This document shows positions 1 through 52,257 of a DNA stretch of 64,000 bases, piece after piece. The notes under the pieces are model-generated. The model saw nothing but the letters and a program-made list of their open reading frames with translations. It did no database searches and was not told where the DNA came from. The translations under genes were made by a program, and so were the position numbers. Origin of the DNA: Mytilus trossulus (lineage: Eukaryota); contig NC_086377.1 in assembly GCF_036588685.1 (NCBI RefSeq), positions 9,796,001 through 9,860,000 on the forward strand. The letters run 5' to 3'. Position 1 is the first letter of the stretch. Each line of letters starts with the position of its first letter.

Positions 1-1088
1 CTCAATTACATTCGTGCAAAACAAAAAGCAAGTCTTAGTTTCATGTTATTTTCAGTATGTTTTTATCAACACAGGATATGTTTGATGTCAACTACGATAT
101 TTTTGGTCCACTACGAAACAGTTTTATCAACTACCAAACTCATCAAAATGTCCACTACGTTACATGAGTTGTACCTTCATATGTGAAGTACTGTCTATTA
201 TTTATCGATAAAAAGTGGTTCTCCAATTCAGAAAAAAGGTTATCGTTCTAGTCTGTAAAAGACATCAAAATGCAATAAGATGTGCGTTTAGGAGCAGTTT
301 CATAGTGGACACATGTTCCCTACGAAACAGTGCATAAATTATGACAACATATCATATTAAAGAGTATTTAAGATTGCTCATTTTATTAACAAACAGGTCT
401 TTAATAGAGGTATTCAAAATAACTTTAATAATTTTGTGTTAGGTCTAAAATTCACATTTTTATTGAAAAACGCCCAGATATGTCTAGATATATTTAGCAA
501 GTTATAATTACTTGATCGTAATTTATTCCTGTACAAATAAAAGATAAGAATTATCATCTGACTGTAAGAATACGCTTTAACAGTTTGATATTTTTGTGCC
601 TATCAATTTCCTTAAGATGTTCTTTGTATGCATTGGTGTTCATCATTTATATGTTGTCAATATGTTTTTTTCTAATAAAAAAATGTAAATATTTACGTAT
701 TTTAAATTCAGATTTGGTAAATAAATAATCAAATTTTAATTTCGTGGATAATTCTTATTCACGAAATACAGGAAATTAAATATGAAAAATTCTTCATTTA
801 CAGTAAGATTATATTTTTTATTTCAATTGTAATGTACATACTGATCAGCGATTTGTATAACACGCCTAAGTAAAAACTAAATGTAAGTAAAATGAGTAAG
901 TATTCAACCTAATCGGAAAGCTGTTCAACCACACCATAGGTTTGTATAAAAATCATAATTGTTTTACTAGTTCTATTTAAAAGACGCGTCATACATTATT
1001 AGCTGTCAATTGTGTATAGTGTAGGATTTTGTTGTCATTGTTTATTTGCCGTTTAATGTAAAGTACCTTGTAATGAATCATTGACAAC
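1..1088 (+). repeat. Upstream segment duplicated at about 30180-31334
   Basis: Colinear high similarity, including recurring CCACTACG/CGTAGTGG motifs. Confidence 0.85.
974..990 (+). promoter_or_regulatory. Candidate TATA-like core promoter (TATTTAAAAG)
   Basis: About 115 nt upstream of the ATG; identical TATTTAAAAGACGCGTC in copy 2 (~31219); ATTTAAATAC at a similar position in copies 3 and 4. Confidence 0.35.
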
Positions 1089-1855
1089 ATGGCTCAGGCA
1101 GCTTTTAAAACGTGTGAGATATGTGTTAGTGCCTCTGGATCTCATTACTGCTTAGAGTGTGAACAGTGCTTTTGTGACAATTGTAAAGGCTTTCATAAAC
1201 GGCAGAGAGGGACAAAGCATCACCAGTTCCAGTCTTCCTCTGATGTTATACCGGAAGTTAAATCAAAATGTAAAGACCACAATGAAGACATAAGTTTTGT
1301 ATGTAATACCTGTAACGTAGCGGTATGTAGCAGTTGTGTGACTGGCAGTCACTTAGGGCATGCCTTTTCTAAACTTCTCGACAGCATATCACAGCTGAAG
1401 GAAACGAATACAACAGACCTGCGTAGAAAAGTACTACAGTCAACCCAAAACATGAAGCAGATAGAAGAGGGTCTGAAGGCATTTGATGTGAAGGTGGAAG
1501 GAATAGTTAAAGCTATTACAGAAGAAGGTACAAGGATAAAGACCATGGTTGATAAATGTATCTTAGAGAAGATTGCATCGGTCAAGGATCAATCCAGGAA
1601 GGAAAGGGACAAATTAACAAAGCTGTTGGAAGATACTCAAAGTAATTTGAAGGCAGGACGCGACTTAGACAAGAAAATACATGAACTAAACAAAACACGA
1701 AACGATGGAAAATTGTTGCAATCTTTACAGAAGCTAACAGCCGACATTGTAAAGCTGACGGTAACGCTTAAACCTGAATTTCCGAACGTACAGTATACTG
1801 TTAAGTCCGCAACAGATAACGACGTTAAACAGTTGTTTGGTAAATACATAATCAG
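1089..1855 (+). CDS. Copy 1, exon 1: RING-less TRIM-like protein (B-box1, B-box2, coiled coil)
   Basis: ORF 1089..1859 with CEIC..HYCLECEQCFCDNCKGFH..H (B-box type 1), CKDH..FVCNTCNVAVCSSC..H..H (B-box type 2) and a long charged helical region. Good start context (ACAACATGG). Ends at phase-2 donor ATCAG|GTAATT, conserved in all 4 paralogues. Confidence 0.92.
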
Positions 1856-3560
1856 GTAATTATACTAAAAGTAACTAAGCATTTTGTAGTCGTAATACAT
1901 GTTTTAATATAACCCATAGTATCCTAATGAGAAAAAAATGCAAAAACACAATAATGTTGTTTTTTTCTAATATCAAATCATGTCTGGATATGATATGACA
2001 GACGAAGGAGAGATAATTCATGAAATACATGTTTGTGTTCATTACAAATGTATTGTTTAATATTATGGATTCAAAATGTGATCCAGTAGATAAATACGGC
2101 AGTGTGCATTTTAATTTGTATTGATCTCGACAATACGTTAACAAATGTACAAATGTAAAAATGCAAAAATACTTGCTTTCAAACCAGAACAGATATATTT
2201 GTTTTTCTCGTTATTCAAATGTGTTATTCTAATTGCATGCATTTTATGTAATATTATAAAAGAAATAAAGACAAAAGAAGTATACCGCTTTACAATAGTC
2301 ATAATAAATCGATTAAACCACATGTAGAATAAATCTGAACAAAACTGAGGGAAACACACATTAACTACAAGTGGAAAGCAACAGAACAACATAAACACTA
2401 TTCTGCTACAAAAACAAACGCCAGAAATACAAAGAAAATGACTTTTTGTTAACAACTGTCATACTCCTGACACTTGACAGAACATTTTATGATAAAATAA
2501 ACATAAAAATTTCTGTTTTTCTTTTATCAGTGAAATGCCTACACAACACACCATGAACAGAGAAATAGAATTGCCATCACCCAAGAGGTAAGGAATATAT
2601 TTGTATATTAAACAGTTTTTAAACTACGCTTTTGACAATGTTAACTTGTCATCAAATGTTTGAGTGAATTACACATTATCTTCTTACATACCTCACCATT
2701 TGACGTGGCAACGATTCTGATTAAGTTTGCATTTTATCCTGCAATTGGGTGTTCTACTATACAGATACAGCCTGCTTTGCTGTACTTGCATACTATACAG
2801 ATATCGCTTTAAAGCTCCACCCACTGCCAAACTGAGTATCGTATGAACCTGCGTGACATCAGACTGTTTATTGCAGTTGCATTCCAATGAAGTATTAATT
2901 GTGAATTAACGATAACTTTATAAATACGTTCTGTTTGTTTTCAAACATTTCTTTAGAGCAACAAGAATCCCACCAATGTTTTGATAACATACACTCATGA
3001 ACATCAGTCTTTTCTACGATGACTTCTATTTCAAAACTTGTGTATGATTTTGTAACAAAAACAGCCATGTCAATTTCAGCATGCATGTTTAGTGAATGTT
3101 TCAAATTGGACAAAGTAGTGTGATTTGTTTTTACTGTTGAAATTAGTTGTTATGCGAAACTAGATAATTATTCACCTAGAACGATGTATAGGTGTTGATC
3201 ATTCGATATTCTTAATTTGCAAACACGTCGTCAACTGAATTTGTGATCACTGTATCGTATGACTACACGGATCTCAAGAGGGATTTCAATTCAAAAATAA
3301 ATGCAAAACATGTGTTTGTGTCTTTCAAAACAAAAATAATAAACAGAATCGTTTGCAGGATAAAGACAATAACTGTTTAGTGTCTTTAAATATCAGCTGT
3401 ACTCGATTCGAAGCAGGTGTAGTAGCTCGCGAAAAGCTCGCATACAACTTGTTTCCTAGCATCGTACAAATACAGCTTACATTTAAAGACACAGTTATTG
3501 TCTATATATATTGTGTACACCAGTTAACCGTTTATTTTTATTTTCGATAAATCCATTAAA

Positions 3561-4010
3561 AAGTCTCTCTGGTTTATGCCGATCCTCTTTTTCCTACTAC
3601 GTACGTTAAACCACACTGACTCAAGCACGATAGCATTTAAGTTAATAAATCTTCTTATGATATGGAAACGCATACTAGTAGCATACATTATTATCAATAT
3701 TGTTTAGATTTTGTTGCATTTAATTTTCGTAAATATACTGCTTGTTAAAATGTGCCTGCTTCTCTAGTTGAAATATTTAAAACCTTTCTATGCTTAAAGA
3801 GTGTCTCTATGGTTTATGTATCTCCTCTTGTATCAACTACGTACGTTAGAACACACTGGCTCGAGCACGATTGCATTTAAGTACATAAATATTCTTATGA
3901 TATGGAAACGCAAACTAGTAGCAACAATTATTTTCAATAGTGTTTAGATTTTGTTAAAATGTCCCTGCTTTTCTAGTTGAAATATTCAGAACCTCTTTAA
4001 ACTTATACAA
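3561..4010. repeat. Two tandem ~240-bp units in intron 1 (also two units at ~62541-63000, one at ~33070-33280)
   Basis: Repeated tctctggtttatg...ctagttgaaatatt. Confidence 0.8.
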
Positions 4011-4922
4011 TATAACCAAAATATAAAAGTTATTCATCACAATTATCTATTGAGGCACGTATAATCAAAAGACGCCAAACTGTTTTACAACAACATAACA
4101 CAGTCATACTGTTTTGTTAAGTGTAGTTTGTCTTTTTATAAATAGTTTTTGTATGCAATATCTTTCCTCATATGTCGAGGAGTTCAACCACTTCAGCATT
4201 CACATTCACAATCGACTGTTGATGAAAGAGTAAACGACTTCAGCAGGTACATTCACAGTCGACTGTAGATTAGGTAGTAAAAGAATCCAGGAGTCACTTT
4301 CATAATCGACTTTTGTTGACGGGGTATATGATTTTATCAGCCACATTCCCGAAATGCATCTGGAATTAGTACCATGAGTTTCGATTGTATATAGTATACT
4401 TAAGAACTATCAGTCATTACTAAATGGTTGGAGTACTATGTAAACTCTTATATTGTTTTGGTGATGTCATCCAATTTTGTTTAAAGGAACGACAAACATC
4501 AATACGACCATTCCAGCTAAATAAAAGTCGAAGTTAATTAAAATGTTTTGTCAAAAATTAGACACACTACGTAACAACAACCCCCACTTACAACAAATGG
4601 TGAATTGTGATACTCTTCGTGGGTAAACAGTTTCTGTTCTACGCGGAACCATAGGAAACTTCTGTGAATTTAAGCAATATATCTTCCCGGAAAAAGAAAT
4701 GTATCTCAGTCTGGGTGTGAGCTGATTTTTCGTCTTTTATATTAATATTACAATTAATTCGAGATTCATTAACTTGGTTTATGACTCTTGTATATATTTC
4801 AAATGATTTTTGATATTTTTGCACTGTTTATGTGTGTACCAGTTAGTAATAGCTTGTTGGATTTTAATATCATCTTGAAATAGTGTAACTTTTAAGTCAA
4901 TCAATAGTGTTGCTCATTGTAG

Positions 4923-4988
4923 TGATTACAAACAGGATGTGATACCAAAGGAGCAGGGAAAATGCCTGTATAGATGTGAAAAGTGTGG
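4923..4988 (+). CDS. Copy 1, exon 2 (66 nt, phase 2-2): (S)DYKQDVIPKEQGKCLYRCEKC(G)
   Basis: ctcattgtag|TGATTAC...TGTGG|gtaagt; in frame with exon 1; homologous exon at 33884-33952. Confidence 0.85.
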
Positions 4989-5176
4989 GTAAGTTCATTA
5001 TAATTGTTTTTATGGACATGACACACAGTTGTATATCTATATCATGTGGCGTATCAAATGTATAATTGCCAAGTGTCAATGAAGTGCATAATAACTTGTT
5101 TTTTTTCTCGAAAAATGCAACTGTTGTCATTTGTTATTGGCTTACGCCACACATATATTTGCACTTTTTAAAAAAT

Positions 5177-5260
5177 CAATAAGAAACATTGATGAACAAA
5201 TCAATACGAAACATTGATGAACAAATCAATACGAAACATTGATGAACAAACCAATAAGAG
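5177..5260. repeat. 25-bp tandem repeat x3
   Basis: caatacgaaacattgatgaacaaat repeated. Confidence 0.85.
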
Positions 5261-6858
5261 TGATAAAGAGCAGCATTGACTTGTAAATAATTTACACATA
5301 TGTATGCAGGTAATGAGCAACATATATTCGCCTGCGTCAGCAGTGATGTAAATGGATTTATAATAAAAAGACTTGACGACACTCATATGTAATCACTCAT
5401 AGTGAGCATTTGGTGGTTTGATACTAAATCATTCACGGGTATTGTGCATGATATGCATAATATGGAGAAATTCATTTTTTATCAGTTAAGTAGTGGTCTG
5501 GAGCTAGCATGCTTGTCAGTAACTGCTAAATTTAATAGTCTATGTTAATATATGAATCATTGCCATTTTGCATAGGTTTTTAAATTACCTTTTCTGACTT
5601 CAGACTCTTTTAAACTGAGTTAATCGCACGAGGTTTGGCTAGACATAAAACCAGATTATACAAACCAATTGCTCTAAAAATGTCCTGTTTCAAGTCAGGA
5701 ATATTGAAATTGTTTTCAAATAGTTCGGTTCTATGTATGTTGCATTGACCTTTTTTTTATTGCAGTTCAGTGTTTCTGTTGTTCATTTGTGACTTCTTAT
5801 AATTGGTGTGTTTCTCTCGATTTTAGGTTTGTAACCGGGATTTGTTTTCTCTCAAAATATTTATGACGTTGAACTACGGTATACTACTGTGGCTGTTATT
5901 GGTACTATCTGGATAGCTGTGTGTTTTTTCTGTCGACATTGAACAGGTGTTTGCACCTGTCCAAATTCAGGAGTCTCTGAGTCTTTGTTAGTCTTTTTCA
6001 ATTTTAATTTCAGTTAACTTATGTGTTTTGGAGTTTGGTATTACGTCAATAAAACTGAGTTAGTTCACATTTTTTGTTTAGAGGCCAGTTAAAGCCCGCG
6101 TCTAAGCGAAGGATTATCTCGCTGTGTTTAAGACCCATAGATTGCCTTCGATTTTTCTCTGCATTTTGTTCGGGATGTTGTCTCTTTGACATATTCATAT
6201 TTCCATTCTCAATTTTACTTGGAAATCAATCTTAGAGGGAAACATATATGATGTTTGGACAATTGTCGAAAGGTCTTAAAATAGAATACACATTGGTACA
6301 CTAATGCAGTTTTGTTTGTTTGAAATTCCAGAAGAAAATTGAATAGCTCAACCAAATTCCTCAATAATAAACGACACAGAATATTTTAAATTGAAAAGCA
6401 TCTAAAACTAAACGACATTTGCCCTTGTTGACGGTTTTGTTTCAGATATTTTAAACGTTAAAAAGGCATAAGGTAGATGACGTATAGCTCTTAATGTAGA
6501 AAATATTGATTAATTAAGATACTTTTTACATATGAATTAGATTTAAGTTACTCAGTTTTGCTGAGTCAAGTCAAAATATTTCTTTTAAGACATTAATTGT
6601 ATAATGCAATAAAGTTAATGCCGCAAATGTTATCATAATAATGTAATGCTCAAACATAACGATTTTAAATGGTTATCTCACAATACAATTTAACTAAACA
6701 TGTACATTGTAAAGGTAATAAAATGAAGTAAACTTAACAAGATTTATTAGAACTATTTGTATTGCTTTTGAAATGCTATCTGGATAAACGGCAACACATC
6801 TATCAGTATTTTTGTTTAGAATGTGTAACTGACACACTTGATCTGTTTCATCTTTCAG

Positions 6859-6879
6859 AACGAAAGAGAGATCTGATAT
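6859..6879 (+). CDS. Copy 1, micro-exon 3 (21 nt): (G)TKERSD
   Basis: tttcatctttcag|AACGAAAGAGAGATCTGATAT|gtaagt; same-length homologue with near-identical flanks at 34773-34793. Confidence 0.82.
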
Positions 6880-6899
6880 GTAAGTATGATCTACGTCTA

Positions 6900-7520
6900 C
6901 TTTAGACCGTTTTACAGTGCTGTACAACTTTGTACATTTTTTCACATTCGATCTTTTATATCTGGGCGTCACTGGTGAGTCTTGTGTGGACAAGGCGCGT
7001 TTTTGGCGTATTGAATTTTAAACCTGATGCTTTTTGTTATCTATTAATCATGTTTTTTCTTTGTCTAATGTGTTCTATTTATTTGTATTGTAGTCCTGTA
7101 ATATTTTGTTGTCATTTCGATGTTACATTTAACTTTGCCATTAAAGTGCGAGGTTTGGCATGCCAAAAAAACAGGTTCAACCTGTACCAAGTCAGGAAGA
7201 TGGCCATTGTTATAGTATTGTTCGTGTCTGTGTGTGTTGCATTTTAACGTTGAGTCGTTTGTGTTTTCTCTTATTTTTGAGATATTGAGATAAGACGTGG
7301 CACGGTACTTGTCTATCCCAAATTCATGTATTTGGTTTTCATGTTATATTTGTCATTCTCGTGGTGTTTTGTCCGATGATTGGTCCATTTTGTGTGTGTA
7401 TTGCGTTTCAGTGTTGTGTCGTTGTTCTCCTCTTATATTTAATGCGTTTCCCTCGGTTTTAGTTTGTTACCCCGATTTTGTTTTTTGTCCATGGATTTAT
7501 GAGTTTTGAACAGCGGTATA
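6900..7520 (-). mobile_element. Dispersed non-autonomous repeat, family B (AAATAAAGGCAACAGTAGTATACCGCTGTTC end); other copies at ~5620-5900(-), ~22795-22930, ~36547-37010, ~37995-38320, ~44367-44705
   Basis: Multi-copy similarity within the window in both orientations; class not determined. Confidence 0.7.
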
Positions 7521-9446
7521 TTCATAGAAATATTTTTTTTTAAGAAGAATTTATTCATCATTACATATAAAATTTTGAGAATTGTTGGGTTTTTAATTTT
7601 AGTATTTCGTATAGCTTGTAAGCATGTATAGACAGTATAGACAGTTGAAAAATCTAGATAATCGCTGAATTAAAAGAGGATTTGTTTTATTTTTATTATG
7701 TTCACTGAGATCAAATAATATTTTTGGTTTGGGAAGTTCCCATGGAGGACATTTCCAAGTTTTAACTTGAGCAACACATTTTAAATCAAAAGAAGCTAAA
7801 TGTGGTTTTAAACCTATACCTAACGGAGGAACTTTATTTTCATGTTTTGCAAATCTATCTTCATAAATCGGATTAAAAACACAGCTGTAGGCAGGATTAT
7901 CTAAATGTAATTGTTATTTGGATGGAGAGTTGTCTCATTGGCACGCACACCCCATCTTCCTATATCTATTTGAATTCGAGCGTCACTGATGATTCTTTTG
8001 TAGACGAAACGTGCGTCTGGCGTATATACTACATTTAGTCCTGGTATCTATGATGAGTTTATTTAATCAACTGAATATGTTTTAGGATTACCATGCTTAC
8101 GATTTATTCCACTCATACAATTGTATGTTTGATGTTTTTACTGAGTTTGATAGTGTTCATCTCCTTTATTTTCTTATTTCAACCAGGAAACTAATAACTT
8201 CTCTGCGGATTAAATATAGCACATACATAATTGCATACAATTTCTAAAGGTATGGCTTCCCTTAAATAAGTTATCGAACGTCATCAGTTACCGACCATGT
8301 AATTGCCAGTCGAGATCGGTAAACACTTTCAGTAGTGGACGTTTGAAATGTATAACTACATACAATAATGGATATGTTCTATTTGTCAGTACATTTCTTC
8401 TATTTTTTCAAAATTAAGTTACAATAAATTTTGATGCGAACCATACGACAGATGCTGAGTTTTCTTTGTATTTTTATCAGAAGTTTTGATAGGCCTTTTT
8501 TTTGTTACTGTGTTGTATGTTTTAGTTGGTTTTTTTATGATTTTCGTATGCCCATCGAATTTTGTTTAAAATATCTATTAAGAAAATAAGCAATTAACCT
8601 CTATTTATATTGGAATAGAAAAAAAAGGTCCCATTACAGTAATTGTGTCTCTTATTTTGCTCACACGTGCACATTGTTGTCAATTCAATGGAATTATATG
8701 CCACTTTCACAAGGTTGAGAAGTTAAGCTAGTTATAAACAAAGTTTTATCCATAATTTCCTACATCAGGAAATTCATGTACGAAAAGATTGGCGAGAGAT
8801 ACTAGACTGACAATCAAACTCATGGATAGAAAATAAACTGAGAATGCCACGGCTAGGAATATAAAAAACGACAAAGACAAACAGAAAAATAATAGAACAC
8901 AAGACATAACACAGAAAACTAAAGACCAAGCAACACCAACTACACCAACAACTTGGTAAAAACGTATATAATATGTTTGCATACTATGTAATTGACAAAA
9001 GTGTTTTATATCTAGCTCCTTATAATTAAATCTTTTCGGCTAGTCATAATCAATAACAAGAAACAATCATTGTTTTTAATATAAAGATAACCACACACTA
9101 GTCAATAAAAGCAATTATGTTTATGTATTCATTTTGTGAAGTGGTTTGTACACATACATACCTCGTTTTACAAATCAAATATTCCTGAAAAAAAAATCGT
9201 TCATAAAGGCCATTCTGCGACCGATACTATTCATTTCTATTTGTCCACTTCATTTAAACTTTGGTTAAAAGTTTTCCATATCATATAGGTATATCAAAGG
9301 TTGCTCGAGCAAAAGAAAGAGGGAAGATATAGAAGTAACATTCCTATGTATACAATAGGTTATCACACTCCTGTGTATATAACATGTAAATACATTCATA
9401 TGTATGCAAAAGGTAAATATTTCAGGATGTACGCCTCCTACTCAGA

Positions 9447-10160
9447 AATCCAACTATAAACACATCAGACATAACTGTATATGTCTAATCCAACTATGAA
9501 CACCTCAGGCATACCTTAAAATGTCTAATCCAACTATGAACACCTCAGGCATACCTTAAAATGTCTAATCCAACTATGAACACCTCAGGCATACCTTAAA
9601 ATGTATAATCCAACTATGAACACCTCAGGCATAACTTGAAATGTCTAATTCCAACTATTAACATCTCAGGCATAATTTTAAATGTCTAATTCAACTATGA
9701 ACATCTCAGACATACCTTAAAATATCTAATCCAACTATAAACACCTGAGGCATACCTTAAAATGTCTAATTCTAACTATGTACATCTCAGGCATAATTTA
9801 AAATGTCTAATTTCAACTATGAACACCTCTGTCATAACTTAAAATGGTTTATGCAACTATGAACACCTCAGGCATACCTTAAAATGTCTAATCCAACTAT
9901 AAACACCTCATGCATACCTTAAAATGTTTAATTCGAACTATGAACACCTCAGGCATAAATTAAAATGTCTTATTCAACTATGAATACCTCAGGCATAACT
10001 TTAAATGTCAACTATAAACACCTCAGGCATATCTATAAGTGTCTAATTCCAACTATGAACACCTCATACGTAACTTTAAATGTTACATAGAACTATAAAC
10101 CCCTCAGACATAACTTAAATGTCTCATTCAGCTATAACAACATCAGGCATTATTTTAAAT
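9447..10160. repeat. 40-bp minisatellite, about 18 units
   Basis: Unit aatccaactatgaacacctcaggcataccttaaaatgtct, head to tail. Confidence 0.93.
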
Positions 10161-10364: not shown

Positions 10365-10373
10365 GCGGTACTG
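10365..10373 (+). CDS. Copy 1, micro-exon 4 (9 nt, GCGGTACTG)
   Basis: gttttatttttcag|GCGGTACTG|gtaagt followed by the conserved ACAGATAAGT motif; frame-preserving. Confidence 0.72.
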
Positions 10374-11048
10374 GTAAGTCTCAAGTAGCAAACAGATAAG
10401 TATAGCTCCCAATTATATATGTAGTTTATTATATATAAGATATTTATACAAAGGTGTAAAGTGAAACAATAATTATGCCATTTATAAGATGTATGATAGA
10501 CTAACGTTATGTCTACGAAAGAGGCGGACGATACCAACGAGACGTTTAAACTCATTAGTCAAATGGAAAGTGATAATGCATTGACAAAAAACTTTTCAGA
10601 CATAAAGTCAATTATCAGTATACAAAATACCTTATGTTATTTTATGCGCTGTTTTCTTGATTAACGTTCATTGAAGATGCCTAAAGCAGAAATGTTTAAA
10701 TCATATCACGTATAATAACCCAAACTGTTGAAGTTATGTCCATAGAGAACGTGCATCAATATGATTATACCGACATAACGTCAGCTTTTTCGAGGATGAT
10801 TAAACCACGATTTCTTTACATATTTTAAATGTATAAAGTGACAAATTATTCAAAAAGCACATTATTTTGTATTATTGATGGCTTTACTTTTTTTAATAAT
10901 CTGGCATAAAAAAACTGTTATCTTAAAATGTTCTCCTTTCTCGATACTACTTATTCAATTATTTCCATTTAATATGGGTGTAATTCATTGCTGAATTGTA
11001 TGTTGTATGCTGGATTTTATAATTATTCATTTGATTCTTTTTTTACAG

Positions 11049-11051
11049 CTC
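11049..11051 (+). CDS. Copy 1, micro-exon 5 (3 nt, CTC)
   Basis: ttctttttttacag|CTC|gtaagtgtcaagtagcaaacagataagt. Confidence 0.65.
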
Positions 11052-11722
11052 GTAAGTGTCAAGTAGCAAACAGATAAGTATAGCGTACAATTATATATGC
11101 AATTCACAATATAAGGTTGTCGATGCATTGATTGTAGTAGAATATATAAATAAAACAATAAACCTATCATTGACATAATATAATTATCTCAGACGCGCAT
11201 GCAGTCAATAAAAGGGTCGGCAAAAACCAATGCGACATTCAAACTCACTAGTCAAATATTAACTGACAAAGACATTACAAAAGCCTAAAATGACAAACAA
11301 CAGTATTCGAAGGAAAGAAAAGCGGGTGATTTCATGTGCAGTTTTCTAGATGTTACTGCATAGGAGACGTTAACAGCAGAGATGGTTAAATCCAATGACG
11401 TATAATAACCAATTACCAACACATTTAAAGAACTATATAAACATAGAGAACAAAACTAAAAATTGTTAAACCCAAGGTCAGCTTTCGTCGATGGTGTTTA
11501 AATCTAAGTTACTTTATACATTTATAAAGCGACACTTCAAAATCATATCATTATCTCATTTCAATGTATGAATTATGACCATACCAAATTATTAATCTGA
11601 TAGAACAAGCTGTCATCCCAACATGTTCTGCAATCCCTTTACTAATTATGACATTAATTCCATTCTAATTGTGATAACTCATTGCTAAATGGTGTTCTCT
11701 ATTTAAGATTACTTTTTTTCAG

Positions 11723-11725
11723 CCC
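11723..11725 (+). CDS. Copy 1, micro-exon 6 (3 nt, CCC)
   Basis: actttttttcag|CCC|gtaagtgtctagtaacaaacagataagt. Confidence 0.65.
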
Positions 11726-12954
11726 GTAAGTGTCTAGTAACAAACAGATAAGTATAGCATACACTCATCTATGCAATGTATTAAATAATACTCATATATG
11801 TATATACACAGGTGTTTTCAGAGTAGTATTATTAAACAATAAACATACATTTTAAAGAGAAAGGTAGTGGAGAAGATGTTTTGAAATTGGGTGGTATTTG
11901 TGTTTTTTTTCAAATAACCAATTTCTGAAGAAAAAAACATGTGTATTCTTCAATGACTATTGTCAGCTATTTACAGAAACCTGCATACATAAGCCAACGC
12001 TTCGAGTTTCAAAAACTATGTCTTGAATATTACAATCATGTCATACCATTTCACAGTTTGATTATACTATTCAAGACATAGTTTTAAAAGCTCAAAGCGT
12101 GTGCTTATACATTCAGGCTGGTGGAAACCTAAATGTGGTGGTTAAGTTTACAACATTGAAAGTTTTCCTAACGTCACACTATTGCGGGGTTTCATCCAGT
12201 TCATTAGTTTACTCTCAATTAATTGATTTTTCCCAAAAAGAATAGTGTGCTATGTTAAATGCATTTACTCCGGACTATGTAGCAACTACTCATCAATAGG
12301 TTATCGTTACCCGAACAAGTAAAAGCAATTGTGTATATATGTTCAACATCATATGAGTAAACGTATACTCGTACGGTTCGGCCATACGCGTACAGTCGGA
12401 CCGTATGAGTATTCGCGTATAGACCAGTACGAGCTGACCATTCATGTTATTAGATCATATGGTTTAAATTTAAACATATCACAATCATATCGACACACTA
12501 ATAATTTCCCAATTGAAAAAAATGATAATTGCAATTTAGGTTGTTATTTATCTTAAAATCTAACATAACTCAATGAAGAAAAAAAAATATTACACATATT
12601 CGTGTTGAATGAAGTACTTCCATTGTTTTATTGTTATATGATGATAAAAATGTCGGCAGTTTTATGTATTGTGCATTTTCATTATAATTTTGACTTAAAA
12701 AAAACACACACAAACACACTCAAGACATTGCATACGTCCGTAGCGCTTTGTTTTAATAACACTGACGTGTTATTGATAAGGCGGAATAATAAGACATACG
12801 TTGTTATGTTTTTACTACAGTGATTTGAATATAATTTACCAGTGGGCATAATAAGAAACAAGACACATACACCAAAATGGATGCAACCAACGTGTTATTT
12901 TATCCTCAAAAGAGAAAACAATACGGGTTGAAATTCCATTTACATTTTATTAAG

Positions 12955-13290
12955 AAGATATAGATATATGAAGATGTGGTGTGAGTGCCAATGAGACAAC
13001 TCTCCATCCAAATAATAATTTAAAAATAAGTTAACCAGTATAGGTCAATGTACGGCCATCAACACGAAGCCTTGGCTCACACCGAACAACAAGCTATAAA
13101 GGGTCCCAAAATTACTAGTGTAAAACCATTCAAACGGGAAAACCAACGGTCTAATCTATATAAAAAACGAGAAACGAGAAACACGTATAAATTACATAAA
13201 CAAACGACAACTACTGTACATGAGATTCCTGGCTTAGGACAGGTGCAAACATTTGCAGCGGGATTAAACGTTTTAATGGATCCAAAACTT
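12955..13290 (+). mobile_element. Dispersed repeat, family A (AAGATGTGG..TGCCAATGAGACAACT end); other copies at ~25245-25580, ~45025-45340, ~50475-50860(-), fragments at ~7911, ~20300, ~39750, ~49775, ~63920
   Basis: Multi-copy similarity within the window; class not determined. Confidence 0.75.
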
Positions 13291-13535
13291 CTCTCTTTTT
13301 CTGAAACAATAGATGTTCATCATTTTTTTTTTTTATATTTTTGCTTCGTTTGAATAGCTATAACATTAAGTAAACTAAGTTTCATTAAGAAAAACATTAG
13401 CAATTTAAAGCAATATGCTAAACTTTATGTAATCAAAATTGATAAACTGATGTTTTGTGAAGACTTGTTTTATGTATCAGGATTTTCCTAGTTATTCCTT
13501 AGATTTTCATTTTTTTTTCTTTTTTTCTTTTTCAG

Positions 13536-13541
13536 TCCTCC
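13536..13541 (+). CDS. Copy 1, micro-exon 7 (6 nt, TCCTCC)
   Basis: long polypyrimidine tract + cag|TCCTCC|gtaagtgttatgtaccgaacagataagt; positional homologue of the 6-nt exon at 38575-38580. Confidence 0.72.
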
Positions 13542-15486
13542 GTAAGTGTTATGTACCGAACAGATAAGTATAAGGTTATAATGTTACAACATTATTAAAA
13601 TTAATGGACAACAGATAGTGAATGTTGTGTGTCGTGCTTTAAATAATGGGAAAATATTAAACTAGTTGTAAACAATTATTATTATGTAAAGGTTACATAA
13701 CCCATTCCTGAATAATAAGCAATGCGATATTTTGACTTTCGTCTTTAAAGAATAACATCATTTGGAAATGATTACACATATAGCACAAGTACAAGGTTTT
13801 GGGCATGCATGACGTCTGCACAACTTATATTCCATCCACATCAGACTAGTCATTTAAATTTTAAATATTAAATAGTTTGTAAAACTAGGGTCTTTATATT
13901 TACCTTTTGCACACTCTGTACTTGACTATAATTAACCAATTCTAATGCAGATAAGACGTGTTTCGGGTTTACTAAGCTGTTATACTAGTGTCGTGTATGA
14001 CTTATTACATCCACTTGTTTGATGCAAAAGTTTGTTATTATTTTTCTCCATTTCTACCTTTTATGATACCTTTATTTTAATATATAATCATCAATCACAG
14101 CGATTGAATATGCCTTCACACACAAAATGAGGGATCACATCGATAATTAAGCTTCTAAATAAATAAGAAGTTAGGTAGTCTTTCAAAGACTATCATCCAA
14201 ATCACCTTTGTCAAACTATTTAAACTATTGTATGATATTGTCTATTTTTTTTAAATAATACATGACAATGTCCCTAGTTTAATTCGCTACTTAAATGTCC
14301 ATGTATGATATATAACTGTCTTTGCGTACACCATGTTCGTCCATTACATGATGTAATACGAGAATAATATCATTGACAATTTCAACATATCAATTGTCTT
14401 AACTTTTTATCGGAAAGTGTCACTTACCCAACCATAAGTATTAATGATAGCTTTGAGCATTTATTGTTATATGAAAGATATGACAAAAGGCAGTTTGTTT
14501 AGAAAAAATATCAAGATGTGAATGTGTATTTGTTTGTTGGAATATTCAACTTGATAATTAATTTTAACATACGAAACAATGTTACTGGGAATTAATAAAA
14601 GTACTGGAAATCAAATATACGTGGATAAAATAACCAGATTCATTACGCCTAAGCTAAAAATTATTTAACAAGAAAAAAGAAATAAAAAAGAAATATTGTC
14701 AATGAGACAGCTTTCAATGACAAACGTTTTATCATAAACAGAGGTTTATAAATTGACCATACGGCTTTAAGTTATGGGCACTATAATACCGTCTTGTAAG
14801 ATAAACATATCAAATATGTAAAGTTTTGTAAAAGTGGAAACTATCTCTGATAAGTTCGATAGGTAGGTCCGAGCTATTTGTTTTAGCTAATATTAAGTAC
14901 TGCAGATAAAAGTTACGATCAATATGTTTCTTTTATTACTTGGCAGAACATATTATTAATTAGTCATACACAGACAGAGATCGTTAATCCTAAATATATT
15001 AGTATAAAAACTTGAACGAATATTGGCTTATTTTGATTTGTCAAGTTTAATTATAACAACAAAATTATTATTAAAATTTGAATACATTGAAAGCGCTTTT
15101 ATATATGACTGTTGTGCAATGGAATAATCGAAGGCAAACATAATCCAAACTATTTACTGATTTAAACCAAAACTAAGTGCAAGATCATACAACTTAACCA
15201 ACAAGACAAATGATTTGTAAAGTATATTAAACTTATTTATTTTTTTTAAAACTAAAAACACTGAAGGACATTTCGAAAGCTAAACATTTACTAAGATCTT
15301 ATATTAAGCAAAACATCAACCACACCGCTAACGAATTAGGTTTCAAAAAGGTAAATGCATTGCATTCAAATAGCATGACTAACCATTTATAACAATTCCA
15401 ATACACGTGTATTTTTGAAGAGCAAGTACTAGGATTATGATGCATTAATTAAATAAAAACAATTATTATTTACTTTATTTTTGCAG

Positions 15487-20970: not shown

Positions 20971-20985
20971 CTGTTCATGTGGAAG
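20971..20985 (+). CDS. Copy 1, micro-exon 8 (15 nt): CSCG knuckle
   Basis: ttttctcattttag|CTGTTCATGTGGAAG|gtaagtactgc; homologues at 39531 and 40337 keep C-x-C-G, with silent changes at phase-2 wobble positions. Confidence 0.8.
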
Positions 20986-23255: not shown

Positions 23256-23277
23256 TTTGATGAATAGAGTCCAGTAA
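23256..23277 (+). CDS. Copy 1, terminal coding exon B: (S)LMNRVQ*
   Basis: tttatttcttcag|TTTGATG...CAGTAA; the CAG TAA stop and following AGAGACA are conserved in the copy-2 terminal exon. Full spliced CDS is 912 nt (303 aa). Confidence 0.75.
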
Positions 23278-30600: not shown

Positions 30601-31334
30601 ATAAACAGGTCTATAATAGAGGTATTCAAAATAATTCTTCAAAAACAGTTTTTGACAAATTGATTTTCCAGTCTTTTGGGTCCGAAATTCACACTTTTAT
30701 TAAAAGACGCCCAGGTATGTCTAGGTTTATTTAGCAATTTAAAATTACTTGATTATAATTTATTACTGTACAAATAAAATATAAGAATTATCATCTGACT
30801 GAAAGAATACGTTTTAACGGTTTGATATTTTTGTGCTTATCCATTTACCTAATATTTTCTTTGTATGCATTGATGTTCATCATTTATATGTTGTCAATAT
30901 GATTTTCTCTAATAGAAAAATGTAAATAATTACGTATTTTAAATTCAAATTTGGTAAATTAACAATCAAATTTTTATTCCGTCGTGGATAATTCTTATTC
31001 ACGAAATACACAAAATTAAATATGAAATGAAAATTTCTGCATTTACAGTAAGATTATATTTTTTTATTTCAATTGTAATGTACATAACGATATTTGTATA
31101 ACACGCCTAAGTAAAACCTAAATGTCAGTAACATGAAAAAGTAATCAACCTAATCAGAAAGCTGTTCAACCACACCATAGTTTTGTATAAAAAAAATCAT
31201 AATTATTTTACCAGTTTTTATTTAAAAGACGCGTCATACATAAATAGCCGTAAATTGTGTATAGTGTAGAATATTGTTGTCATTGGTTATTTGCCATACA
31301 TATGTAAAGTACCTTATAATGAATCATTGACAAC

Positions 31335-32101
31335 ATGGCTCAGGCAGCTTCTTAAACGTGTGATATTTGTGTAAATGCTTTTAGATCTCATTACTGCCTA
31401 GAATGTGAACAGTACTTTTGTGAAAATTGTAAAGGCTTTCATAAACGGCAGAGAGGGACAAAGCACCACAAGTTTCAGTCTTCCTCTGATGTTATACCGG
31501 AAGGGAAATCAAAATGTAAAGACCACAATGAAGACGTAAGTTTTGTATGTAATACCTGTAACGTAGCGGTATGTAGCAGTTGTGTGACTGGCAGTCACTT
31601 AGGGCATGCCTTTTCTAAACTTCTCGGCAGCATATCACAGCTAAAGGAGACGAATACAACAGACCTGCGTAGTAAGGTACATGAAGCAACCCAAAACATG
31701 AAGCAGATAGCAGAAGTTCTGACGGCATTTGATGGGAAGGTGGAAGGAATAGTCAAAGCTATTACAGAAGAAGGTACAAAGATAAAGACCATGGTTGATA
31801 AATGTATCTTAGAGAAGTTTGCATCGGTCAAGGATCAATCCAGGAAGGAAAGGGACAAATTAACCAAGCTATTGGAAGATACTCAAAGGGATTTGAAGGC
31901 AGGACGCGAATTAGACAAGAAAATACATGAACTCAACAAGACACGAAACGATGGAAAATTGTTGCAGTCTTTACAGAAGCTTACAGACGACATCGGAAAG
32001 CTGACGGTAAAGCCTATACCTGAATTTCCGAACGTACAGTATACTGCTAAGTCCGCAACAGATACCGATGTTGAACAGCTGTTTGGTTAATACATAATCA
32101 G
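31335..32101 (+). pseudogene. Copy 2, exon 1 of TRIM-like paralogue with two nonsense codons
   Basis: Colinear with copy 1 exon 1 (767 nt, no frameshift) but TAA at codon 7 (31353-31355) and at 32088-32090; donor ATCAG|GTACTT. Confidence 0.88.
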
Positions 32102-33883: not shown

Positions 33884-33952
33884 TGATTACAAACAGGATG
33901 TGACACCACCAAAAGAGCAAGGGAGACACCTGTTGAAATGTGACGAGTGTGG
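33884..33952 (+). CDS. Copy 2, exon 2 (69 nt; NAGNAG acceptor allows a 33881 start): DYKQDVTPPKEQGRHLLKCDEC(G)
   Basis: cattgcagtag|TGATTAC...TGTGG|gtaagt; homologue of 4923-4988; expression uncertain because exon 1 is disrupted. Confidence 0.75.
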
Positions 33953-34772: not shown

Positions 34773-34793
34773 AAAGGAAAAGAGATCTCATTT
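34773..34793 (+). CDS. Copy 2, micro-exon 3 (21 nt): KEKRSH
   Basis: tttcatctttcag|AAAGGAAAAGAGATCTCATTT|gtaagt. Confidence 0.75.
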
Positions 34794-36439: not shown

Positions 36440-38610
36440 TCAGATTTTTGCTACAGTATTATGATTGCTATATGATTACCATAACCATCATAGAAACAAA
36501 ACACATACAGAAAAAGTTGATGCTATTTTGATTTGTATTGTCTCCAAATAAAGGCAACAGTAGTATACTGCTGTTCGAAATTTATAAATCGATAGAGAAA
36601 ATACAAATCCGGGTTACAAACTGAAGCTGAGTGAAACGTATCAAATATAGGAGAACTACGTTACAACAGAAATTCAACACCAAAATGTAACACATACAGA
36701 AACGAACTATAAAGTAACAATGGCCATTTTCTGACTTGGTACAAGGCATATAATGAAATAATAGTTGGTTAAACTGTTTTTGTTGCATGTCAAACCTCAC
36801 GCTTTAATGGTAATGTTAATAATAACATTAAAATGGCAACACTACACGACAGGGCTACAATTAAAAATCGAAGAAAGCATAGGACAGAGGAACAAACGAA
36901 TAATAGCCATCAAAAGTTACCAGGTTAAACATTTTATACGCCAGACGTGCGTTATGCCCTCACCATACTATGCTCAGATGAAAAACGTTTGAAAGCCAAA
37001 ACAAATACAAAGTACAAAAGAGATAAACGGCTTGAACAGTCATTTACATAATTTTGGGCAGATATTCATGTTTAACACTTGGTTTGTTATTTTTTATATG
37101 TAAGCATCGTTTAAATAGCAACAACATTCACACAGTTTCATCTAAGCAACACACAAGCAATTTAAAGCAATATGAAAAATTAGCAAATCGATAACTGATG
37201 TTTTGAGAAGATGTTTTATATGTTTTTGAAATTTTGAAGTTTTTCCTTATATTTCAAACTTTTTTTTTATATTTTTCAGTAAGTGTCAAGTAGCAAACAG
37301 ATAAGTATAGAAAACAATTATATATGCAATTTATAATATAACGATGGTTATGCAATGGCGTTAGCAGAGAAGTCATGTTAAATAATAAACATAACAGTAC
37401 CATTTTATGAAGATAAATACTTAAAAAGTGTTTTAAAATTTGTTAGTATATAACCATTATCTGTGTTTTGTTTTATTTTTAAACCCTTTTATAAAGATAA
37501 AAAGTAAAATGAAAGCATTTGTGTTCTTAAATAATAGCTCTCAGCTTTTCAAATATAAGAATAAATTGATTAGAGTCCTACCCTTTCGAATTTTACACTG
37601 AGTTCAGTATTTATGTGAATTTACTGTTTGTGAAGTGATAAGACATGATAAGATATTCGAGACTGAGTTTTTAAAGCTTGAGCCATGTGCTTTTTTTATA
37701 TGTACAGCCAGTTTTTGTATACATATGTTGAAAAGAATGTCGGCAGTTCTGTATGTTTTGCATTTCCATAATCATTCTGTCTTTCAAAAAAGGCAGAACA
37801 CTTTAAAAATTTCAAAACGCCCGACGCGCTTTTTTAGTTAAGGTAACGTAAACTTGGCGAAGCGGAACAAGTAAGACATAATTAGTTAAGATTTTTTTGC
37901 CACAGTTCTATGATTGCTATATGATTACCATATGCATTATTGAAACAAAACACATACAGAAAAAGTTGATGCTATTATGATTTGTATTGTCTCCACAGAA
38001 ACGAACTATAAAGTAACAATATCCATTTTACTGTCTTGTTACAAGGCATTTTATGAAATAATGGTGGGTTAAACCTGTTTTTGTGGAATATCAAACGTCC
38101 CGCTTTAATGGTAATGTTAACGATAACATTAAAATGACAACATTACACGACAGGGCTACAATAAATAAATCGAAGAAAGTATAGGACAGAGAAACAAACG
38201 AATAATAGCCATCAAAAGGTACAAGGTTAAAAAATGTATACGCCAGACGTACGTTACGTCCTCACAAAACTGTGTGCAGATGAAAAACAGTTAGAAAGCC
38301 AACACAAGTACAGAGTACAAAAGAGTAAGGCAGTTCGAACAGTAATTTTCCTTTTTTTGGGGAAGATATTCATTTTTACCACTTGTTTTTTTTTATATTT
38401 AAGCATCGTTTAAATAGCGTTTAAATAGCGACAGCATTCACACAGTTTCATCTAAGCAACAAACAAGCAATTTAAAGCAATATGAAAATTAGCAAATTGA
38501 TAAGATGTTTTATATGTATCTGAATTTTTTGAAGATTTTCCTTATACTTCAAACTTTTTTTTTATATTTTGTAGGTATAGGTGAGTGTTATGTACCACAC
38601 AGATAAGTCT
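36440..38610 (+). repeat. Tandem duplication (period ~1.3-1.45 kb) of a micro-exon cassette in copy 2
   Basis: ~36450-37280 matches ~37900-38575 (atgattgctatatgattacc... to the acceptor). Confidence 0.8.
38575..38580 (+). CDS. Copy 2, 6-nt micro-exon (GTATAG)
   Basis: tttttatattttgtag|GTATAG|gtgagtgttatgtaccacacagataagt; flanks homologous to 13536-13541. Confidence 0.65.
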   Translation, partial: V

Positions 38611-39530
38611 ATTGTGATAAGTTTACCAAAAAAGAATGCATGTACATCATATAGTGATTGGTGTGTGTGGTGTTTTTAAAAAATTGGAAAGTATAAAGCC
38701 AGTTAAAACATTTTTTTTTTTATATAAATGTTATAAGAAGCCAGGCGATATTTTGAATTCTGTTTTTTTTAAGAATAACATCAGATAGAGATGATTACAT
38801 ATATTACATAAGTCTCTCCAAAATTTGTGTATTGTGACTTATATTAGAACGTTCATATATTAAGCTTTAAATCCAATGAATATCTTATGTTTCATCGTTA
38901 AATGATTATTAATTTTTATTAAACTAGGGTCTATACATGTTTAGCTACCTTTTTCATATTTTGTTCTATACTATAATTAACCAGCCTAATGTAGACGTAT
39001 TTGGGGTTTACTGAAGTCGTTTATGACTTATTACAATCACTTGTTTGATGACACAGCTGGTTGTCCGTCCCCGACAATACCTTTCAACATTTTTAACTAG
39101 TATGACTCATTCAGTTCAATTTGTGTAATAATAAATCACAACAATTGAATATACATCCATAAAAAATGAGGTAACCCATCAAGAAAAGAGCTATCAAATA
39201 GATAAAAAAGCCAGATAGTCTTTCAGAGGTTATAATCAACATCACCTTTGTCAAGTTATTATAACAAATATAAACTGTTGCCTACACTTTTCCAAACAAT
39301 AAATAGCAATGTCCCTTATGACATTCGATACGAAAATGATCATATGTGACGTATTAATAATGTCTTCGCACGCAACCTGTTCGTCCTTACCATTCTCTAA
39401 AGCAAGTAGTGGTAGTAAAACAATAAAACTGTATTGGCAGCTGTACAGATCCCTATATGACATTATGTGAATCAATTAACGTAAAGTTTGATATGGATGT
39501 CCGAGCGACTTGTTTTATTTCTCATTGTAG

Positions 39531-39545
39531 ATGTTCATGTGGCGG
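39531..39545 (+). CDS. Copy 2, 15-nt micro-exon a: CSCG(G)
   Basis: tttctcattgtag|ATGTTCATGTGGCGG|gtaagtactgc. Confidence 0.75.
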
Positions 39546-40336
39546 GTAAGTACTGCAGATAAAACTTACAATCCATAGTTCTCTTCTATGACATGGCAGT
39601 TCATAGTATAAATTGGTTATACAACGACGTAGATATTAAATGTTCATTTAGTTTATTAATTAAATTAAATATGACATACGTATTTTGGTTGCTTTGTTTT
39701 ATTTTTCCATTTAGCATATGGTAGGCATTACATAATATAATTATGAGTATCTTCCTGTCACAAGTCAACAGCCTGTAATTCAGTGGTTGTTACAAATTTG
39801 TATTACGTTTTGAAAAAAAAATAGTTTTCTCTTTTGAATTGTTTGACATTTGTCATTTCCGGGCCTTTTTAGCTGATTATGCGGTATGGGCTTTGTTACT
39901 TGTTAAAGAACGTTATGTGACCTATAATTTTTCTGTCATTCGGTCTCTCTTGAAGAAACAAAATATAAAACATATTTCAGGAAATTCCAATAGAGAAAAA
40001 AAAATCTATATGTTCTATCCTCTATAGTATATGATATATGTATCATATTAATCTTTTAAATATCATCGTTTTATTGACCTATCAGTCATTGAGTATCATA
40101 GATCGAAATTAAATACGTTGTTGGTTCATGTGATAATAACGTCGTAAAGTATAGAGATGTGCGCACCATACATACTGTTAATTGTCTTAAAAAAGTTCGT
40201 AAATGAAATTTAACCATATGAACGAGAAAATGCACACTGATAGGTCCAATCTGTAGTAAAATCCGAAATATAGAAAAAATGTATGCAACAGTGTTGAAGA
40301 GATAGTTTTATATGATATAAACCGTTCTTATTTCAG

Positions 40337-40351: not shown

Positions 40352-40789
40352 GTGAGTATAAAAACGAAAACACATAAATGTTTCACCTTGCATGGCTTGG
40401 AAATCTAAACAATGAATTTGCAATGAAAATAAGTATATGTCTTCTTTTATATAACTTTGTATCAGTTTTAACGAGGTATAAAATAAGTATTTCTAATTTC
40501 CATAGCATAGTTAACATAAATACGAAAACAAATGACATGAATAAACAGGCAATGACGTGTTTGTATTTATCTATAAAAAACTCGCTATATAAAAATATAA
40601 CGTATGACTTCACTTACATGTATTAAGTCCTTACATAAAACAACATTACTTTATTTAAGTGTTATGGGTGTCTTCTACATAAGTTTATTACTTGCAATGC
40701 GTTTCAAGGAGGATGAACAATTTATATTCAGCAGGCAGATATCGCATATGTATAACAACACTTATAAACTTGATATATTACTTTTGTAG

Positions 40790-40814
40790 ATCGATGTACT
40801 TCATCAGTCAGTAA
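40790..40814 (+). CDS. Copy 2, terminal coding exon: SMYFISQ*
   Basis: ttacttttgtag|ATCGATG...CAGTAA; homologous to 23256-23277. Confidence 0.7.
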
Positions 40815-41779
40815 AGAGACAGCCAGTGACAAACATTTGACAGATACTGAAAGGGCAGAAAACACTTCCTTCTGATGCTACAGTTGCAAACAATCTTAAA
40901 ATACTGTTCCTTGTATTATTTGTATGTTAGTTTTGATTTTGAAAGTTGTGTGATTCTTGCAACATAAAAAGTTTACCATAATGTTGGTTTTTTTAACTTA
41001 AAAAGAATGATGTCTAACTTGTAGCATTACACAATCATTCACCGTTTGCTATTCTTATAGAAATGATAACAAATTAAAACACTTTTTTCATGTCTTAGGA
41101 TTATATAAGTTTCGAATTAGTTAATTAGACTTTGTTATTTTTAATGTTGTTATTTGTTTCTGCATCATGAATTAAACTTTGCTACTAGTGTTACGAGAAT
41201 GATTTTTTATCGGTTTTGCCATGATGTTCGAAAAGAAAAAAAAACATACATCAAACATTTGTATACGTCTTGTGGGGAAATTTTGTGTAATGGACTGCAG
41301 CTAGATAATTCTGAGCAACCATGTAATGTTATTTTCACAATTGCTGTGAAGCCACTTTCTGTTTACCGAAAGTTCGAAATGTTATAACTCTCACTGTAAA
41401 AGAAAGAAATTATACAGTATTCATTTAACCTAGATCAATTGTATGCTGCGACGAAGGTCGATTCGGATATTGATGTTCCTCTTACTACGAAGGAAAATAG
41501 TCTCACTTAAAAGTTAAAGCATGTGCATTGGTCGTACTTTATGTATCTACTGATATAGAATGATAACTAAATGTGTTTTCAGCTTTTATATGACTCTCCA
41601 GGTGAAATCCAGATGATTTGATTACTTGCTCTCAACCAGTTTCCACAATCACGTCACAACAATATATTGGAAACAAGCGATCTTACCAAGATAGCCCATA
41701 TACCCTCCCAGCGACACTTTAACAGAAAACATGACAACTAAGAAGCGGTAACTTGATTGGAGATCTTACTGACATAAAA

Positions 41780-52199: not shown

Positions 52200-52257
52200 G
52201 TAATTCTACTAAAAATAACTGAGCATTTTATAGTCGTAATTCATTTTTTAATATAAC

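Follow-up and report, generated by a model that had tools for sequence, protein, structure and literature searches.

The stretch considered here, 64,000 nucleotides (nt) of the mussel Mytilus trossulus (C5:9796001-9860000 of a 1.3-Gb assembly) that we will call the window, is AT-rich (G+C 31%) and contains four paralogous first exons, each encoding two B-boxes and a coiled coil. Downstream of the first of them, the gene continues through a series of exons of 3 to 9 nt, and each of these is followed, within its intron, by a motif that has the appearance of a second 5' splice site with an A in place of the G at +1 (CAG-ATAAGT). We will use the term cassette for such a micro-exon together with its acceptor, its donor and the conserved intron bases downstream. 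In the following, we will focus on these cassettes, on the TRIM-like genes that carry them, and on the possibility that the motif serves as a docking site for the U1 small nuclear ribonucleoprotein (snRNP).

The first gene (copy 1) was modelled by mapping the C-terminal tails of RefSeq M. trossulus proteins onto the window, and all of its exons lie on the plus strand. Exon 1 (1089..1855) is an open reading frame that encodes the two B-boxes and the coiled coil recognized by Pfam, and it ends in phase 2 (..AG|GTAA). It is followed by exon 2 (2531..2587, 57 nt, phase 2), which was placed by tblastn of the RefSeq tails and by its AG/GT boundaries, by exon 3 (4923..4988, 66 nt), which carries the first Cys knuckle (..YRCEKCG) and ends in ..TGT GG|GTAAGT, and by exon 4 (6859..6879, 21 nt, TKERSD). 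Despite their GTAAGT donors, neither the 66-nt nor the 21-nt exon has an ATAAGT motif after it. Then come the four micro-exons, of 9 nt (GCGGTACTG, 10365..10373, between a pyrimidine tract with CAG and a GTAAGT donor), 3 nt (CTC, 11049..11051), 3 nt (CCC, 11723..11725) and 6 nt (TCCTCC, 13536..13541), the latter being of type B, that is, the last cassette of a chain. Behind the second-knuckle exon (20971..20985, 15 nt, C TGT TCA TGT GGA AG) there is a degenerate relative of the motif, GTAAGTACTGCAAATAAA, and the terminal exon, whose coding start lies at 23256..23277, reads ..LMNRVQ and then a stop. Once joined, these ten exons give an intact frame of 322 codons that ends in ...YRCEKCG-TKERSD-MRYCSPPP-CSCGS-LMNRVQ, with AG/GT at all boundaries and every exon end in phase 2, and the exons of 21, 9, 3, 3, 6 and 15 nt form a tandem symmetric micro-exon architecture between ordinary exons. 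Because the joined frame places the micro-exons between both knuckles, they encode on this model, together with the 21-nt and 15-nt exons, the loop between the Cys knuckles CxxCG and CxCG(G). Moreover, since every coding exon (1089-23277) ends in phase 2, the frame survives the skipping, duplication or loss of any internal exon; owing to this phase, even a TAG used as a 3-nt exon elsewhere in the cluster (C5:9477133) is not a stop. A minisatellite with a unit of 40-41 nt and about 17 copies (window 9410-10119) occupies the intron just upstream of micro-exon 1.

The window contains six exact copies of the 10-mer ACAGATAAGT, all on the plus strand (starts 10392, 11070, 11744, 13560, 37297 and 38599), as compared with a mean of 0.24 copies in dinucleotide shuffles of the window, 0 of 100 of which reach six. 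In 6/6 cases it starts 18 nt past a GTRAGT donor, with zero indels. In copy 1, the conserved intron blocks next to the donors extend over 10374..10404 for micro-exon 1 (pseudo-5' splice site CAG-ATAAGTA at 10393-10402), 11052..11082 for micro-exon 2 (ACAGATAAGT at 11070-11079), 11726..11756 for micro-exon 3 (11744-11753) and 13542..13572 for micro-exon 4 (13560-13569). In copy 2, a type B micro-exon of 6 nt (GTATAG, 38575..38580) with a GTGAGT donor precedes a block at 38581..38611 (motif at 38599-38608). When the sites are aligned, they share GTA at +12..14, C at +16 and the bases from +19 to +28 without indels and diverge outside, exactly as the initial annotation had described; the full set of invariant columns is +1, +2, +4..+6, +8, +12..+14, +16, +19..+28, +30 and +31, the alignment being free of indels from the donor to +31 and poor further out. 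That annotation had also counted six cassettes with exons of 9 nt or less, which holds for five of them, where a pyrimidine tract and AG precede an exon of 9, 3, 3, 6 or 6 nt, but not for the site with its donor at 37279. The latter reads ...tttttca|GTAAGT with no acceptor and is a dead cassette (37279..37309) rather than an exon, in which the donor and the full motif (37297-37306) are kept and the acceptor and exon are deleted.

The proteins to which these cassettes belong have Mytilus 'TRIM71-like' proteins as the closest relatives of their B-box/coiled-coil exons. Pfam recognizes zf-B_box (E values of 2e-13 to 7e-15) and TRIM_CC in the copies, and a B-box followed by a coiled coil is the arrangement by which TRIM proteins are defined. 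No RING finger appears among the Pfam matches of the host protein, which has a second B-box/ZZ-like match at the N-terminus instead and begins with MAQAASKTCEIC.., directly into the B-box. A signal peptide looks unlikely from the N-terminal sequences, in which none was noted, none having been searched for. The C-terminal Cys module has no Pfam match, and the AlphaFold2 model is weak (mean predicted local distance difference test, pLDDT, of 62), with a long helix over residues 92-201 and short strands over the C-terminal residues 289-322 (pLDDT 58-77); the modelled C-terminus is compatible with a small zinc-ribbon-like module, without demonstrating one. Copy 2, also on the plus strand, has its exon 1 at 31332-32090, with a TAA at 32088-32090 where relatives have Lys (..QLFG*YII) and an open frame that starts late, and it is probably a pseudogene in this assembly. 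Its exon 3 (33884..33952) was placed by tblastn of the RefSeq tails, its 21-nt exon 4 (34773..34793, KEKRSH) has no motif downstream, and its 15-nt RCSCGG exon (39531..39545) is followed by GTAAGTACTGCAGATAAAA. The copy 1 counterpart (14860-14990) of the region of this RCSCGG exon (39500-39640) is decayed, the CSCG exon at 20971-20985 being present instead. A second exon of the CxCGG type (ATGTGTTTGTGGAGG) is seen at 40337-40351, and a last coding exon of the long isoform type lies at 40789..40875 on the plus strand, 27/28 of its residues matching the tail of a RefSeq protein (P0018). The first exons of copies 3 and 4 (51391-52203 and 60748-61638) are separated by 9.4 kb, their second exons lie near 54170 and 62314, and no cassettes were found between these two copies in the window.

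The main argument that the cassettes are used comes from proteins. When 20 exons of 3 or 6 nt are joined in their genomic order, they yield the exact loops of four RefSeq M. trossulus proteins: IRWGICGY(R) in P0019 from ACG, CTG, GGGCAT, CTG, CGG and TTATCG; (F)GYHGYR in P0007 from CGG, TTATCA, CGG and TTATCG; KLHWGFRYP in P0104 from ATT, GCA, TTG, GGGCTT, CCG and TTATCC; and the loop start LLRR in P0003 from GTT, GCG, GCG and TTG. In particular, the missing exons of P0019 (GGG+xAT) and P0007 (TTATCG) were deduced from the protein first and then located where they had been predicted, with canonical splice sites. All 20 loop-validated exons carry the ATAAGT motif, and the phase-2 symmetric layout holds in these four genes besides copy 1. 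By this agreement between protein and genomic sequence, the cassettes of 3 to 9 nt are real consecutive phase-2 micro-exons. The loops are rich in Trp, Gly, Tyr, Phe, Arg and Cys, as in KLHWGFRYP (P0104), IRWGICGY (P0019), GYHGY (P0007), LLRRWELE (P0003) and KWGFCWY (P0018), a composition that recalls binding loops. When the P0007 tail was used in a protein word search, only 5 matches resulted, with no independent transcript-derived proteins among them. Among the related proteins collected (P0001-P0106), most models from M. edulis, M. galloprovincialis, M. coruscus and M. californianus either stop just past the first knuckle (..CG or ..CGKEERSD) or continue into the intron, and it appears that the annotators missed the micro-exons there.

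The motif is far more conserved than its surroundings, which was the comparison by which the initial annotation proposed to judge it. In 21 cassettes whose far flanks are less than 60% identical, the majority base reaches a frequency of 0.99 over donor positions +1..6, 0.83 over +7..18 and 0.97 over the motif (+19..28), and it falls to 0.60 over +29..40 and to the background level of 0.44-0.50 beyond +40; on the other side, it is 0.78 over the last 20 nt before the exon and 0.52 further upstream. The exon itself follows the opposite trend. In pairs of 3-nt cassettes with saturated far flanks (d 0.65-0.68), d is 0.05 for the motif and 0 for the donor and reaches 0.70 for the exon, and in close pairs the flanks differ by a d of 0.03-0.05 versus 0.29 for the exon, so that in close paralogues the exon changes at about 7 times the rate of its own intron. 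The micro-exon is thus, as the aligned paralogues have it, the hypervariable and fastest-evolving part of a strongly constrained intronic frame. Because the exon varies most inside the conserved block, neither gene conversion nor youth alone is sufficient to account for the conservation of the motif, and gene conversion as its only source is ruled out.

How far does this arrangement extend in the genome? A 28-nt pattern combining donor, T at +8, GTA, C and motif has 112 exact copies versus 0 for the reversed-pattern control, and the 100 places listed are all on C5 between 8.14 and 10.47 Mb, nearly all on the plus strand. BLAST with one cassette gave 40 scored matches, again all on C5 (8.14-11.85 Mb). 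Read at the level of sequence, the motif is therefore the property of one gene family on one chromosome, in a multi-megabase Mytilus tandem array, and because of this confinement it is no general rule for micro-exons. Within the family, the initial annotation had placed it after every ultra-short exon. An unbiased sample of 264 kb, taken blind to the motif, has ATAAGT at +10..+40 behind 16/17 candidate exons of 9 nt or less, as compared with 5/103 other GTRAGT hexamers and a background of 1.5% per 31-nt window, although a binomial P for 16/17 overstates independence because the cassettes are paralogues. The statement fails, however, for a subfamily whose exon reads CGT, in which ACAGAAA[AT]GT replaces ACAGATAAGT and the pyrimidine tract, the CAG and mostly the GTAAGT are kept.

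The CGT cassettes are instructive as natural variants. Six of them, with acceptor and donor intact, lie inside the P0003, P0019 and P0104 genes, and they are skipped in all three RefSeq models. Their exon is invariant (14/14 in the relaxed listing), when the exons in use include 17 different triplets among 32, and some of them have lost the donor (GTAACT, GTTAGT) or the acceptor (GAG). On this evidence, the cassettes without an ATAAGT core are unused and decaying. The subfamily was seen at loci L005-L011, L016, L020, L023, L029 and L030 (e.g. C5:8238019 and 8637428). Spacing varies too. The initial annotation had an invariant motif 22 nt downstream of the exon, which is correct within the window but must be relaxed genome-wide, where the offset between the true +1 and the pseudo +1 is 22, 18 or 15 nt and where only ATAAGT, mostly ATAAGTA, is invariant, the CAG part being variable (CAT, CGG, TTG, GAG). 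TTATCG and TTATCC cassettes have the pseudo-site 18 nt past the donor, and GGGCAT and GGGCTT cassettes carry CATATAAGT, with the pseudo-site at 15 nt. The relative of the motif behind the 15-nt exon, GTAAGTACTGCAGATAAAA, is without GT and conserves CAGATAAA. As for the substituted base, G at the pseudo +1 is found in 0 of more than 112 copies, and the GTAAGT-type pattern has genome-wide 0 forward and 3 reverse matches, none of them in the cluster.

What could read such a motif? That it equals the donor consensus with only the G at +1 changed to A, as first annotated, is borne out by its pairing potential. CAG-AUAAGUAU, 15-22 nt past the true donor, pairs with the canonical U1 5' end at 10/11 positions. 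With that assumed 5' end, the predicted U1 duplex reaches -8.5 kcal/mol for the pseudo-site, on par with real donors (-7.7 to -9.1 kcal/mol), versus -3.7 and -6.6 kcal/mol for the variants that have lost the motif and -0.7 to -3.0 kcal/mol for the middle GTA element. The genome has a tandem array of at least 42 U1 small nuclear RNA (snRNA) genes with a period of about 1.3 kb (C14:50057228-50217257; Rfam RF00003, 147-148 bits). A role of RNA structure is rejected: RNAalifold on 21 cassettes gave 0 pairs of conserved structure, no reverse complement of the block that could act as a docking site is present in the window, and no Rfam family was matched in window 1-42000.

We consider that there is about an even chance that the motif enhances splicing from within the intron by offering U1 a second site, at which no cleavage can occur. 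The module would consist of a pyrimidine tract with CAG, a variable exon, a perfect GTAAGT, and some 24 more conserved intron bases with the ATAAGT(A) core, to which a second U1 snRNP would bind 15-22 nt past the true donor. A U1 snRNP on the true donor would clash with the acceptor-bound factors, which are just 3 nt off, and the exon cannot supply the donor positions -3..-1 because it is hypervariable. The neighbouring site, uncleavable because of its A at +1, could instead recruit U1 and U1-70K and thereby stimulate both the upstream 3' splice site and the adjacent true donor, without ever yielding a frame-shifted exon 22 nt longer. Such a role has precedents, since a natural U1 site at about +17..+20 enhances the definition of PAH exon 11 (PMC5933811) and exon-specific U1s (ExSpeU1) bound downstream of a donor rescue exon skipping (PMC3349419). 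It is believed that exons shorter than about 50 nt resist exon definition on steric grounds and rely on the U1-associated PRP-40 (PMC8378409). The initial annotation went further and proposed a virtual exon of 25-31 nt, from which the site would hand off to the real donor; a virtual exon of that size would still fall short of the roughly 50 nt that exon definition normally requires (PMC8378409). The broader idea of a cis mechanism holds up better: the exons are real, the motif is conserved like a donor, it is absent after the 66-nt and 21-nt exons, and cassettes that lack the core are skipped in the RefSeq models. Its generality for micro-exons must be given up.

Several observations weigh against a second U1 site, or at least against the strength of the case for it. 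The U1 5' end was assumed to be canonical rather than read from this genome, and the U1 genes on C14 were not matched in four genome pattern searches with ATACTTACCTG extended by human- or fly-like downstream sequence. The predicted duplex of U1 with CAGATAAA, which stands behind the 15-nt exon, is weak (-1.8 kcal/mol), and because this sequence is conserved all the same, a factor that reads GATAA rather than U1 is hinted at. Exon use was judged from RefSeq models, and the evidence behind these NCBI models is not visible. Four RNA runs labelled with the same species gave near-zero coverage and no joints over window 1000-6999 (exons 1-4), which allows no verdict. Because the CGT cassettes go back to a single ancestor and have a further difference at +15, their skipping counts as one natural event only. 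The motif is also retained in a few dead cassettes and in nine orphan copies (GTAGGT...ACAGATAAGT), which have no acceptor and lie 183 nt behind some of the cassettes, and because these copies still carry it, part of its conservation must be due to youth. Finally, 30 of the loci used had been found via the motif, which biases that part of the sample.

Two of these points come with observations of their own. In the RNA runs, a depth of 1-3 was seen on exon 1 in one run, with loose ends from repeats only; the only well-covered stretches (window 2730-2775 and 6915-6999) are covered on both strands, with loose ends on both sides, and they are probably expressed repeats rather than the host gene. 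As for the orphan blocks (GTAGGTGTCACGTAGAAAACAGATAAGT), they stand behind GCG-type cassettes with no tract or AG before them (L005, L006, L007, L010, L011, L020, L023, L029 and L030; e.g. C5:8237646, 8360624 and 9476495), and they could be extra U1 sites or decayed cassettes.

The enhancer block could also be read by something other than U1, such as an RNA-binding protein on (C)AGAUAAG/AUAAGUA, or it could position U6/U5 or set the order of intron removal. The conservation of the block and the skipping of cassettes that have lost the motif would fit any enhancer equally, and the bases from +7 to +18, including the GTA at +12..14, are conserved with little complementarity to U1, just as the 15-nt exon's CAGATAAA keeps GATAA at the expense of U1 pairing. 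What speaks for U1 is the shape of the constraint: it falls exactly on the intronic half of a 5' splice site (ATAAGTA), which is invariant, and leaves the CAG half free to vary, as would be expected from U1 pairing, and we know of no RNA-binding protein with the specificity required. We therefore regard a reader other than U1 as rather unlikely, though it deserves to be kept in view.

If U1 does bind the pseudo-site, it might do so as a decoy that weakens or delays the true donor, making the micro-exons regulated alternative exons or imposing an order of intron removal. Repressive pseudo-5' splice sites are known, as in the P-element case; the pseudo-site and the true donor, which lie within one U1 footprint of each other, pair equally well with U1, and the many differing RefSeq tails suggest alternative exon use. 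A decoy, however, predicts that cassettes without it would be used constitutively, when the motif-less cassettes are precisely those left out and the motif is present in 20/20 validated exons, which makes this possibility improbable.

A slim chance, in our view, is also all that is left for a motif without function, left over from an ancient donor duplication of 22 nt and spread by recent cassette duplication or gene conversion. The cassettes are indeed paralogues in a young tandem array, dead and orphan copies keep the motif, and GTAAGT, GTA and ATAAGT at +1, +12 and +23 follow an 11-nt rhythm that fits an origin by duplication. Such a relic would nevertheless not have sharp boundaries, as here, where flanks at a d of about 0.65 surround a motif at 0.05 and an exon at 0.70 that conversion would have homogenized too, and its core would not be invariant in 20 used exons and decayed in the unused CGT family.

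The remaining candidates can be dismissed briefly. AGATAAG fits the WGATAR consensus and ATAAGT is the consensus of a U2-type AT-AC donor, but it is highly improbable that the motif acts as either: a GATA-factor site in the DNA is ruled out by a motif that occurs only on the transcribed strand and at a set distance of 15-22 nt past a donor, and a U2-type AT-AC donor by the 22 nt and the frame shift that it would add to loops that need the GT donors in RefSeq. A U12-type donor does not apply, since ATAAGTAT mismatches /RTATCCTT, and neither does a recursive splice site or recursive-splicing exon (RS-exon), since 3, 6 or 9 nt are retained and needed for the loops and the downstream site is AU in every copy.

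Most of the elements of this module have been described separately. Like the U1 enhancer of PAH exon 11 and the binding sites of ExSpeU1s, the cassettes have a U1-complementary intronic site about 15-25 nt past the authentic donor, and in those systems the downstream site promotes definition of the upstream exon and is never cleaved (PMC5933811, PMC3349419). The mussel site differs from them in being disabled by an A at +1, in being conserved in more than 100 paralogous cassettes and in serving chains of 3-9-nt exons, its link to U1 being predicted from sequence alone. Recursive splicing, with its ratchet points and RS-exons, likewise involves an acceptor that almost abuts a strong donor and a donor-like site shortly downstream, which could serve to define a short exon in the first step, and its outcome is set by the competition of two donors (PMC6224609, PMC8605326). 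The mussel cassettes, in contrast, keep 3-9 nt in the mRNA instead of forming a 0-nt ratchet, and because their downstream site is without GU, there would be neither donor competition nor an RS-exon product. PRP-40-dependent micro-exon splicing (PMC8378409) addresses the same problem of too short an exon and also involves U1 snRNP components, but PRP-40 is a trans-factor that works via intron definition, with no cis pseudo-donor described. The 3-bp micro-exon of Drosophila homothorax (hth), nested in a 48-nt exon (PMC7392893), comes close as well: in both cases a 3-nt exon is followed by GTAAGT and by a second donor position downstream of a shared acceptor. In hth, however, the distal donor is functional and gives a longer alternative exon while the mussel site is non-cleavable, and hth has a single such exon where the mussel genes have chains. 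Chains themselves are found in the schistosome micro-exon genes (MEGs), multi-copy families with variable protein segments, where runs of symmetric micro-exons with lengths in multiples of 3 lie between ordinary exons. Their exons are of 6-36 nt and their products are secreted, whereas the mussel exons go down to 3 nt and belong to a B-box/coiled-coil protein; we know of no conserved pseudo-donor in MEGs. The intronic U1 enhancer class, single 3-nt exons as in hth and recursive exons are thus already known. In the literature, we found no description of more than 100 exons of 3-9 nt that each have a conserved, disabled donor behind them, of chains of up to six such exons, or of such exons building a W/G/Y/F/R-rich hypervariable loop in an expanded TRIM-like family.

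These elements may together amount to a dedicated mussel cis-module for single-codon exons, made of a perfect acceptor, a perfect donor and a disabled donor for U1 docking, with which about 100 TRIM-like paralogues would rebuild a loop residue by residue, possibly for immune recognition; we put this forward tentatively, as a possibility that has something in its favour. If it is true, the duplication, deletion or skipping of cassettes would generate an aromatic- and glycine-rich, paratope-like hypervariable loop between zinc knuckles. To the question of how the spliceosome copes with exons much smaller than exon definition requires, the answers available so far are, to our knowledge, trans-factors (SRRM4, PRP-40) or single special cases. 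The locus would offer more than 100 natural replicates of one cis solution, with chains of up to six consecutive exons of 3-6 nt, and the hypothesis is directly testable because natural 'mutants' are built into it, in the form of CGT cassettes, dead cassettes and spacing variants. The motif is also a usable landmark for such exons, since most annotation pipelines truncate these genes after the first knuckle. The locus shows, in addition, that exons of a single codon can be units of protein evolution.

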